Assembly: GCA_001600695.1 (NCBI GenBank)
Contig: BCKQ01000003.1
Coordinates: 904,654 to 968,653 of the forward strand
From: Ascoidea asiatica JCM 7603
Taxonomy: Eukaryota > Fungi > Ascomycota
Reading direction: 5' to 3'
Length of the DNA stretch: 64,000 bases
Of this stretch, positions 58,513 to 60,842 are shown in pieces. Numbering within the stretch: position 1 is the stretch's first letter; every line of letters begins with the position of its first letter. A program made the translations under genes and the position numbers. The notes below the pieces were generated by a model, which was given only the letters and a program-made list of their open reading frames with translations, was not told the origin of the DNA and ran no database searches.

Positions 58513-58990
58513 ATGCCACTCATTCAGAGAAATTTAATCAAAGTTTCTTCATTCTTTTATCCTTCTAGAGTTAATATTTCCAATTTCATTTCAATCAAAT
58601 TCAATCACACATCATCAATTGATAAAAAAAATATTAATAATGATAATATAAATTCAAATATTTCATTACCTGGAATTGTTAAATCAAAATTATCTTTTTT
58701 CAATCAAGAAGAATTAAAAAATTCAAATATAATAAAAAAATGGTTTTCATTTGGTAAACATATTTTAAAATTTCATTTTAATGGTGTTAAAATTTTATAT
58801 TCAAATAATAAATTTATAAAAAAAAATTTATTAAATTCAATTTATATTAATAAAATTAATTATAAAAATATTAATAATATTTATCCTCAATTACTTTCTA
58901 CTTCATTTTCATCTTCAAATTTTAAATTATCTGATTTTAATACTTATGTTTTAAATGAAATTTATATTTCAAATGTTGAATATAAAACTC

Positions 58991-59032
<42 letters not shown>

Positions 59033-59721
59033 TTGAGAAAAATTCTAAAAATTTAGTTAAAAAAAGTATTTTAAATATTAAAAGAAGTGAATATCAATTA
59101 ATATTAAGAACTTTTAATGATTATAATAAATTACCAAAATTTCTTATAATCTTAATAATATTTGAAGAATGTACTCCATTATTAGCTTTATTATTTCCAA
59201 AAATTATACCAACAACATGTTTATTACCTTTTACAAATAAAAAAATATATAAATCAAAAATTGATTTAATTTCAAAAAATAATTTTAAAATTTCAAATTT
59301 AATTAATGATTTTTTTCAAAATCAAAAAACTTCTTATCATTTTACTAAAAATGAATTAATTCAATTAATAAATTATTTTGATATCTCATTTGTAAATTCA
59401 TTTTCATATTCAATTTTTTTATCAATTTTTCCAAAAAAAATTTTACCTTTAGAAATTTTAAGAGATACTTTAAATAATTTTAAAAATGAAATTTTAATAG
59501 ATAATTATTTAATTTTTGTTGAAAAAAATGGGGTTGAAAATTTAAATATTCAAGAATTATTATTAGCATGTTTTAAAAGAGGTTTAATAACTTCAAAAGA
59601 TTATGAATGGATTGATTTAAATGTATTTTATAATGAATTTTCAAATGATAAAAAAAATATAATCAATGAAAAGCTTAGAAAAAGATTATCAGATTTCATC
59701 AGCATTTGTAAATATAAATGA
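58513..59721 (+). CDS. Mitochondrial LETM1-related protein (Pnt1-like)
   Basis: Presequence-like N-terminus; GKHILKFHFNGVK, RSEYQLILRTFNDYNKLPKF..IFEECTPL..PTTC, LNIQELLLACFKRG. Confidence 0.7.
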
Positions 59722-59977: not shown

Positions 59978-60616
59978 TTATTTAGTATTCTCTTTGAGAA
60001 AGTTCTTGAAATTCTTAATTTCAAATTCTTCTTCATCCAAATACTTTTTCAAAACATCAATATTAACTCTATTATTAGAAACTTTAACCCATGAAAAATT
60101 TTTCTTTGGATTAAACATTAATTCACTAATTTTAATTATTGATTTTTTTAAATCTAATTTAAATTGTTTTAATTCTTTTTCATCTTTTGGAATATGATCA
60201 ACAGAAAATAAATATGTACCATTTATTGATTTTGTTAAATCATAGTTATTTTTTTCATAATTTTCTTTTATTATATTATTATATAATTCAATAAAATTTT
60301 TTTTAATTAATCTTCTTTCATAATTTCTCCAAGATGCATATTTAAATGGATTTAAACTTTTAGAAATAAAAACTTTTTTAGCTTTTCTTGGATCAATATC
60401 TAAATCTTTATCATTACCTTCATAATTATCTTTATATCTAATTTGATATGATGGTGATGTCTTTTGAAAAAATCCTATGAAATGAGATTTTGGTAAATAT
60501 GTTAAATCAAAATATGGTGATCTATATTGCAATTTGGAAAGATATGCAATTCTACTTGCGTAAAAATATTGAAAAGCAGATCCATTTATTCCCTTTATAT
60601 CTTTTATTAGATTCAT
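59978..60616 (-). CDS. Basic 212-aa protein; candidate bacterial-type RNase P protein (RnpA-like), possibly mitochondrial
   Basis: ORF is well supported; family call rests on the A-xx-RN-xx-RR-xx-K-xx-F motif (aa 94-108) and flanking elements in RnpA order. Confidence 0.5.
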   Translation of the reverse strand: MNLIKDIKGINGSAFQYFYASRIAYLSKLQYRSPYFDLTYLPKSHFIGFFQKTSPSYQIRYKDNYEGNDKDLDIDPRKAKKVFISKSLNPFKYASWRNYERRLIKKNFIELYNNIIKENYEKNNYDLTKSINGTYLFSVDHIPKDEKELKQFKLDLKKSIIKISELMFNPKKNFSWVKVSNNRVNIDVLKKYLDEEEFEIKNFKNFLKENTK

Positions 60617-60810
60617 ATCTATTCATAAATAATTTTAACTTTTATTCTTTCTCATTACCAAAATCAATCAAATCATCAGAAAGAAATATTTATTTTATTT
60701 TACAAAAAAAACATCAATCTGAAAAATATTAATAAAGTTCAGATTTTCACCGGTAAAGAACTTTGAAGTTTTTATATTCGCTGCCGGTGCTAAACACAAA
60801 CAATATGAAA

Positions 60811-60842
60811 ATACCAGGGCTTTAACCATAGAGCCCTGGTAT
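60811..60842. promoter_or_regulatory. Inverted repeat ATACCAGGGCT-N10-AGCCCTGGTAT; palindromic Tbf1-like site or hairpin
   Basis: Perfect 11-bp arms at 60811-60821 and 60832-60842. Confidence 0.55.

Follow-up and report, generated by a model that had tools for sequence, protein, structure and literature searches.

The window analysed here, a 64,000-nucleotide stretch of contig BCKQ01000003.1 (positions 904,654 to 968,653 of the forward strand; assembly GCA_001600695.1) of the yeast Ascoidea asiatica JCM 7603, contains on its minus strand, at 59978-60616, a complete and intronless open reading frame (ORF) that runs from an ATG start to a TAA stop, codes for 212 amino acids and is this yeast's single-copy orthologue of PET130 (Saccharomyces cerevisiae YJL023C). 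In the explanation that best fits the analyses below, PET130 proteins would be strongly diverged and enlarged relatives of RnpA, the protein of bacterial-type RNase P, consisting of the RnpA core fold, a loop insertion and a helical C-terminal extension. We give roughly even odds (a probability of about 0.5) to the PET130 family being an RnpA-derived cofactor of mitochondrial RNase P. The wider proposal, that all budding yeasts including S. cerevisiae keep in PET130 a much-altered RnpA, as an unrecognised small subunit of the mitochondrial enzyme together with RPM1 and Rpm2, is put forward more tentatively. The finding concerns the whole PET130 family, and not an orphan of one lineage.

The ORF has 20% G+C in a window of 23% G+C, and it contains no CTG codons, so the reading of CUG in this yeast is irrelevant to it. 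Its product is basic (pI 9.6), with one acidic residue within the first 36. This agreed with an earlier note on the same DNA, made from the sequence, which had further described the ORF as an orphan. The latter description was not borne out: an exhaustive phmmer search of 1.8 billion representatives returned 35 relatives at E<1e-3 (best 1.2e-14). Named members of the family came from Babjeviella, Kluyveromyces, Brettanomyces, Kazachstania, Pachysolen, Candida arabinofermentans, Ambrosiozyma, Zygosaccharomyces, Saccharomycodes, Cyberlindnera, Scheffersomyces, Martiniozyma and Magnusiomyces, and PET130 or Pet130p was the database name given to matches, or to their clusters at 90% identity, from Kluyveromyces marxianus, Saccharomycodes ludwigii and Cyberlindnera jadinii. 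The K. marxianus PET130 protein aligned with amino acids 6-196 by BLASTP (E 1e-17), and the representative of its cluster was matched by phmmer at E 7.2e-9. When the family profile was used in a six-frame search of the 20.3-Mb genome, the ORF was the sole locus found (E 1.1e-56). A spurious ORF was therefore rejected, in view of the 35 relatives and of the confident predicted fold described below. An independent DNA run of the same organism carried an identical ORF, which says nothing on selection. A Pfam scan of the ORF gave no match; PET130 is a family of budding yeasts, Saccharomycetaceae included, for which Pfam has no model. A word-indexed homology search with the ORF returned nothing, and with the family alignment of 36 sequences it recovered two of those 36 and no other protein; the exact protein sequence was not found in a look-up across public assemblies.

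Gene order was also compared. One PET130 relative adjoins BBC1-like and MPS3-like genes, in agreement with what we take to be the surroundings of YJL023C on the S. cerevisiae map, whereas in this genome the ORF is flanked by PUS7 (TruD domain) and a LETM1-like gene. Distant yeasts have often lost synteny, and the missing BBC1/MPS3 neighbourhood is no argument against PET130 orthology. Separately, in two other yeasts the PET130 orthologue was found next to an LSO1/LSO2-like gene (L119:4255-4929 and L120:6064-6348), which is not so in the window.

The likeness to RnpA is centred on amino acids 94-108 (ASWRNYERRLIKKNF; 60293-60337), which hold the "RNR"-like motif A-SW-R-N-YE-R-R-LI-K-KN-F. Neither the strict nor the family-level pattern matched anywhere else in the six frames of the window. 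From the local amino-acid composition, the strict pattern has a chance expectation of about 0.02 per 3.5 million residues. As a reference, 32 RnpA genes from diverse Pseudomonadota were used, in which the motif is A59-x2-R62-N63-R64-x-K66-R67-x2-R70-E71-x-F73-R74, with each position present in at least 29 of the 32. The spacing claimed in the earlier note was thus confirmed against these 32 sequences, and in the protein from this yeast A, R, N, R, R, K and F stand at the motif positions. Conservation of the motif was then counted in 44 family members: A94 was present in 36, R97 in 43, R/K101 in 28, K/R102 in 32, R/K105 in 42 and F/L108 in 42. Therefore, the RnpA spacing is kept family-wide for the Ala, the first Arg, the three basic positions (+7, +8 and +11) and the Phe (+14), and the distance from Ser87 to Ala94 (7 residues) is the same as that from Ser52 to Ala59 in RnpA. 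Conservation extends along the protein, with Gly9 (44/44), His45 (42/44), Arg51 (37/44, Gln in this protein), Lys52 (44/44), Ser/Thr53 (44/44), Pro55 (37/44), Asn68 (34/44), Ser87 (31/44), Pro90 (42/44), Asp132 (33/44), Gly133 (44/44), Tyr135 (36/44) and Pro143 (35/44). Features peculiar to PET130, without a counterpart in RnpA, are the I-K-G motif, His45, the loop R-K-S-x-P and the W-V...N helices of the C-terminus.

AlphaFold prediction on the 36-sequence family alignment gave a confident model, with a predicted local distance difference test score (pLDDT) of 87.7 and a predicted template modelling score (pTM) of 0.83; prediction on the single sequence was too poor for use (pLDDT 42.9). The modelled elements follow the order alpha-beta-beta-beta-alpha-beta-alpha with a beta3-alpha2-beta4 crossover, as in RnpA, to which an insert and a tail are added. 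From the N-terminus to the C-terminus of the protein, the features are the following:
59978-60616, minus strand: coding sequence of the PET130 (YJL023C) orthologue, intronless, 212 amino acids plus TAA, single copy in the genome.
60587-60598, minus strand: I-K-G-I, family-specific N-terminal motif, amino acids 7-10 (Gly9 in 44/44 members, Lys/Arg8 in 42/44).
60557-60583, minus strand: modelled aromatic-rich helix, amino acids 12-20, corresponding to RnpA alpha1.
60434-60532, minus strand: three modelled strands (29-32, 36-42 and 56-61), amino acids 29-61, corresponding to RnpA beta1-beta3.
60350-60433, minus strand: insertion relative to RnpA, amino acids 62-89, modelled at low confidence (pLDDT about 60-67) and ending in K86-S87-x2-P90.
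60248-60349, minus strand: long helix, amino acids 90-123, corresponding to RnpA alpha2 (the RNR helix) in the model and by hhalign.
60293-60337, minus strand: RNR-like motif A-x2-R-N-x2-R-R-x2-K-x2-F, amino acids 94-108, placed by hhalign onto RnpA A59...F73.
60200-60220, minus strand: modelled strand, amino acids 133-139, corresponding to RnpA beta4.
60119-60181, minus strand: modelled helix, amino acids 146-166, corresponding to RnpA alpha3.
59981-60109, minus strand: helical C-terminal extension, amino acids 170-212, absent from RnpA and carrying the family W-V...N motif.

The stretch from 29 to 61 includes the family-conserved F36, Y40, P42, H45 and R/K-K-S-x-P loop (here Q51-K52-T53-S54-P55), and hhalign placed this R-K-S loop on the region of the conserved Arg27 of RnpA. 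The strand at 133-139 is preceded by D/N132-G133, with the glycine in all 44 members, and is aligned there to the conserved Asp84 of RnpA. In RnpA, the pre-tRNA 5' leader is held in a cleft of which helix alpha1 forms one wall. Most of the pieces that the earlier note had read as falling in RnpA order were recovered in the model: SAFQYFY lies in helix 12-20, YRSPYFDLTYL in strands 29-32 and 36-42, the RNR stretch in helix 90-123 and FKLDLKKSIIKI within helix 146-166, and GTYLFSV corresponds to strand 133-139. KKVFISKS was the exception: it falls in the low-confidence insert (pLDDT about 60) as a short helix rather than a strand.

When the PET130 model was used in a fold search, RnpA occupied ranks 1-3 among 48,161 chains. 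The RnpA matches start at model residues 1-13 and end at 163-168, and among the families found they alone cover the N-terminal helix; the other folds of the ribosomal protein S5 domain 2-like type start at residues 19-28. Foldseek gave no significant E-value, and RnpA entries were prominent in its output (template modelling score by target 0.39-0.55). The combined AlphaFold and Foldseek check proposed in the earlier note thus predicted an RnpA-type fold, to which Foldseek by itself lent no significance. In the ESM Atlas, the top match of the shape search was a PF00825 (RnpA) cluster, and with language-model features 16-17 of the 30 nearest clusters carried PF00825. The top language-model cluster contained 98 hypothetical proteins, mostly from Basidiomycota, and automatic annotation already tags some fungal proteins as PF00825.

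Profile-profile comparisons were carried out with hhalign against the 32 RnpA sequences. The whole family (36 sequences) scored 28.5 (P 9.8e-4, probability 22%, 112 columns aligned), the enlarged family (44 sequences) 31.3 (P 5.6e-4, probability 30%), and a subgroup of 14 sequences containing Magnusiomyces 35.4 (P 9.8e-5, probability 58%). Permuting the columns lowered the score to 10.5 +/- 1.8 for the whole family (maximum 19.5, n=200) and to 11.9 +/- 2.1 for the subgroup (maximum 18.6, n=100), and the reversed whole-family alignment scored 11.9; the real scores are about 10 standard deviations over the permuted-column controls. Ribosomal protein S9 from the same genomes, a basic RNA-binding protein seen among the weak fold matches, was used as a negative control, and it scored 11-12.4 with PET130 (P 0.43-0.54) and 13.6 with RnpA. 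The P-values carry no multiple-testing penalty because the comparison had been fixed beforehand by the earlier hypothesis, and they nevertheless stay short of what is customarily asked for to declare homology. In these alignments the family Y-A-x-W-R...R/K...F was put on the RnpA A-x-x-R-N-R-x-K-R-x-x-R-x-x-F, and D-G-x-Y, ahead of strand 4, on Asp84. A hidden Markov model of the RnpA set matched two family members at E about 1e-4 (in a small set searched), and Pfam PF00825 gave weak matches in 2 of the 36 (best E 0.026). At the level of sequence profiles, these results indicated that the similarity of the PET130 family to RnpA is specific.

The genome also encodes RPM2. A 1081-amino-acid ORF on the same contig (1303380-1306625, minus strand), about 340 kb from the window, carries the RPM2 domain PF08579 (84.3 bits versus a cut-off of 27.6) and is the Rpm2 orthologue of this yeast. 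Since RPM2 is present, the RnpA-like protein would act beside Rpm2 and not in its place; the two coexist here, as they must in S. cerevisiae, which has both genes. Rpm2 is the only protein of yeast mitochondrial RNase P to have been identified, and it is restricted to budding yeasts (PMC3790967). The enzyme has never been reconstituted from Rpm2 and RNA, and further proteins were not excluded (PMC3790967). Deletion of pet130 in S. cerevisiae leads to loss of mitochondrial DNA (mtDNA), and PET130 has been listed with the translation and RNA-maturation genes needed to keep mtDNA (PMC7453639).

Based on these data, the following role could be drawn for PET130. The protein would enter mitochondria, where its basic RNR-type helix would bind the reduced mitochondrial RNase P RNA (RPM1/rnpB) at its conserved core and the cleft between the aromatic helix 1 and the sheet would hold the 5' leader of the pre-tRNA, so that PET130 would serve mitochondrial RNase P as a small cofactor, alongside Rpm2. 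Without such a cofactor, neither tRNA maturation nor translation could proceed in mitochondria, and this fits the respiratory-deficient, mtDNA-unstable phenotype reported for the S. cerevisiae pet130 deletion. That the motif has partly decayed and new modules are present may reflect that yeast mitochondrial P RNAs have lost most of the docking surface of the bacterial RNA. The role in RNase P is an inference, and the mitochondrial location of this species' protein is taken from the PET130 family.

Several observations weigh against an RnpA-derived RNase P cofactor. Conservation of the RNR motif in the orthologues, required by the earlier note, is partial: Asn98 is present in this protein and in 9 of the 44 members, and neither the second Arg of R-N-R nor the RnpA E71 and R74 are conserved family-wide. 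Judged as evidence of homology, the hhalign probabilities of 22-58% lie below the usual bar of 90%. PF00825 matched neither the window protein (at E<=10) nor any part of the whole genome in six-frame translation, and two family profiles run with hmmsearch against the sequences of the PDB recovered no RnpA chain; the few matches given there by the ORF (phmmer) and the family profiles all had E above 0.09. Of the bacterial-type identity proposed in the earlier note, the RnpA-like fold and the RNR-type helix held in structure prediction, fold search and profile-profile comparison, and a Pfam-level match did not follow. The species' protein has no N-terminal presequence: 8 residues stand ahead of the invariant Gly9, versus 16-185 in most relatives, whose extensions are basic and typical of mitochondrial presequences, and the net charge of its first 25 residues is +2. 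An upstream exon with a presequence was considered and dropped, as an in-frame TGA lies 9 nt 5' of the ATG and no credible splice or branch signals were seen by eye. No RNA sequencing runs were found for this organism. COX1 was not found in a six-frame search of the 71 contigs of the assembly, from which the mitochondrial genome therefore seems to be missing, and an RNase P RNA of bacterial type (Rfam) was not found in this assembly with its seeming lack of mtDNA. Purification of mitochondrial RNase P from S. cerevisiae gave the 105-kDa Rpm2 alone (PMC3790967). Finally, yeast mitochondrial P RNAs retain little beyond P1 and P4 (PMC3790967), and because they are so reduced much of the docking surface of bacterial RnpA is gone.

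Some of these points would be expected if PET130 had descended from RnpA and, keeping the RNA-binding fold, had left RNase P for a different task in the expression of mitochondrial genes, such as the binding of rRNA, mRNA or tRNA or a part in ribosome assembly or RPM1 maturation. The incomplete motif, the conserved features without RnpA counterpart named above and the isolation of Rpm2 as the only protein of the purified enzyme (PMC3790967) all suit such a change of function, and the deletion phenotype, seen for numerous genes of the ribosome and of translation, is not particular to RNase P (PMC7453639). However, the retained residues cluster on the helix by which bacterial RnpA contacts P RNA, the RnpA fold family has no established role in organelles besides RNase P, and in Ostreococcus and Andalucia nuclear-encoded RnpA proteins occur together with P RNAs of organelles (PMC4919922, PMC7050145). 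We consider this alternative distinctly less probable than a cofactor of RNase P, and still the strongest of its competitors. Convergence, in which a small alpha/beta RNA-binding fold of the S5 domain 2-like type acquired a basic helix by chance and has no RnpA ancestry, appears unlikely. It is at odds with the top three ranks of RnpA in the fold search and its sole coverage of the N-terminal helix, with hhalign scores about 10 standard deviations over shuffled columns and well over S9 (PET130-RnpA exceeding RnpA-S9), and with six motif positions in exact RnpA spacing across 44 sequences; moreover, fold prediction and profile comparison are independent lines of evidence.

The earlier note had supposed that this lineage might keep RnpA and rnpB as its mitochondrial holoenzyme in place of Rpm2, and had suggested looking for an absence of the latter. 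Nothing besides the RnpA-like features themselves speaks for such a lineage-specific holdover. The RPM2 gene with its 84-bit PF08579 domain on the same contig contradicts it, and the family is not special to this lineage: it spans the budding yeasts including Saccharomycetaceae, with members in Kluyveromyces, Zygosaccharomyces, Kazachstania and Saccharomycodes, relatives of the Rpm2-using S. cerevisiae (PMC3790967). It is thus very improbable.

In comparison with bacterial RnpA/C5 (PF00825; PDB 1A6F, 1NZ0, 2LJP and 3Q1Q), the PET130 protein is longer by about 100 residues and has an insertion of 28 residues ahead of the RNR helix and a helical tail of 43 residues. It is too diverged for Pfam to detect, the motif's Asn, second Arg, Glu and last Arg lack conservation, and it has its own invariant IKG, His45 and R-K-S-x-P; it is also nuclear-encoded and coexists with Rpm2. 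With its PET130 orthologues it aligns end to end, in single copy and with the same conserved motifs, and it differs from them in being the shortest complete member found (212 amino acids), in having almost no N-terminal extension and in the Gln at position 51. Nuclear-encoded RnpA has been reported in prasinophytes and Andalucia, and not in fungi (PMC4919922, PMC7050145). The Ostreococcus tauri and Andalucia godoyi genes resemble PET130 as eukaryotic nuclear genes of RnpA type, in organisms with an organelle-encoded RNase P RNA (PMC4919922, PMC7050145). Their products are still recognised by standard domain models, and that of Ostreococcus complements an Escherichia coli rnpA mutant, whereas PET130 has diverged much further, in yeasts whose mitochondrial P RNAs have undergone drastic reduction. 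Rpm2 shares with PET130 a nuclear location of the gene and a requirement for mitochondrial gene expression in budding yeasts; as a 105-kDa protein with the RPM2 domain it is unrelated to PET130 in sequence and size, and is probably a partner of the PET130-like protein and not a relative.

No link of PET130 or any fungal protein to RnpA was found in the literature available as open full texts (subscription journals and curated databases were outside this scope), and reviews up to 2024 do not mention one. The protein make-up of RNA-based fungal mitochondrial RNase P has been an open question for three decades, and PET130 is a respiration gene without an assigned molecular function, which would gain a mechanism if it were a diverged RnpA. 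In that case, fungal mitochondria would have kept the two-part design of the bacterial enzyme, next to an addition specific to their lineage. Under the wider proposal, the failure to rebuild the enzyme from Rpm2 and RNA alone would be explained, and related PF00825-like proteins would become candidates for the missing mitochondrial RNase P protein of other fungi. The question is directly testable in S. cerevisiae with existing strains.

Regarding the surroundings of the gene, an out-of-frame ATG at 60625-60627, 11 nt upstream of the start codon, opens a 24-codon frame that overlaps the start of the PET130-like gene and might lower its translation. The neighbouring ORF at 58513-59721 (plus strand, 402 amino acids) carries an Asn run and matches LETM1_RBD with 27.5 bits versus a cut-off of 25.3; it probably codes for a diverged mitochondrial protein of the LETM1/Mdm38 family. 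Functional clustering with the LETM1-like and PUS7 neighbours was considered and dropped, no evidence for it having been found, and tRNA and Rfam scans around the PET130-like gene found nothing. The 330-bp spacer that separates the stop codon of PUS7 from the start codon of the PET130-like gene, in a region of 23% G+C, contains a G+C-rich hairpin at 60811-60842 with 14-nt arms (93% complementary) and a 4-nt loop; the hairpin occurs nowhere else in the genome, and neither Rfam nor tRNA scans match it. There is a second dyad, CACCGG...CCGGTG, at 60748-60789, and an independent isolate differs at 60809, just outside the hairpin stem.
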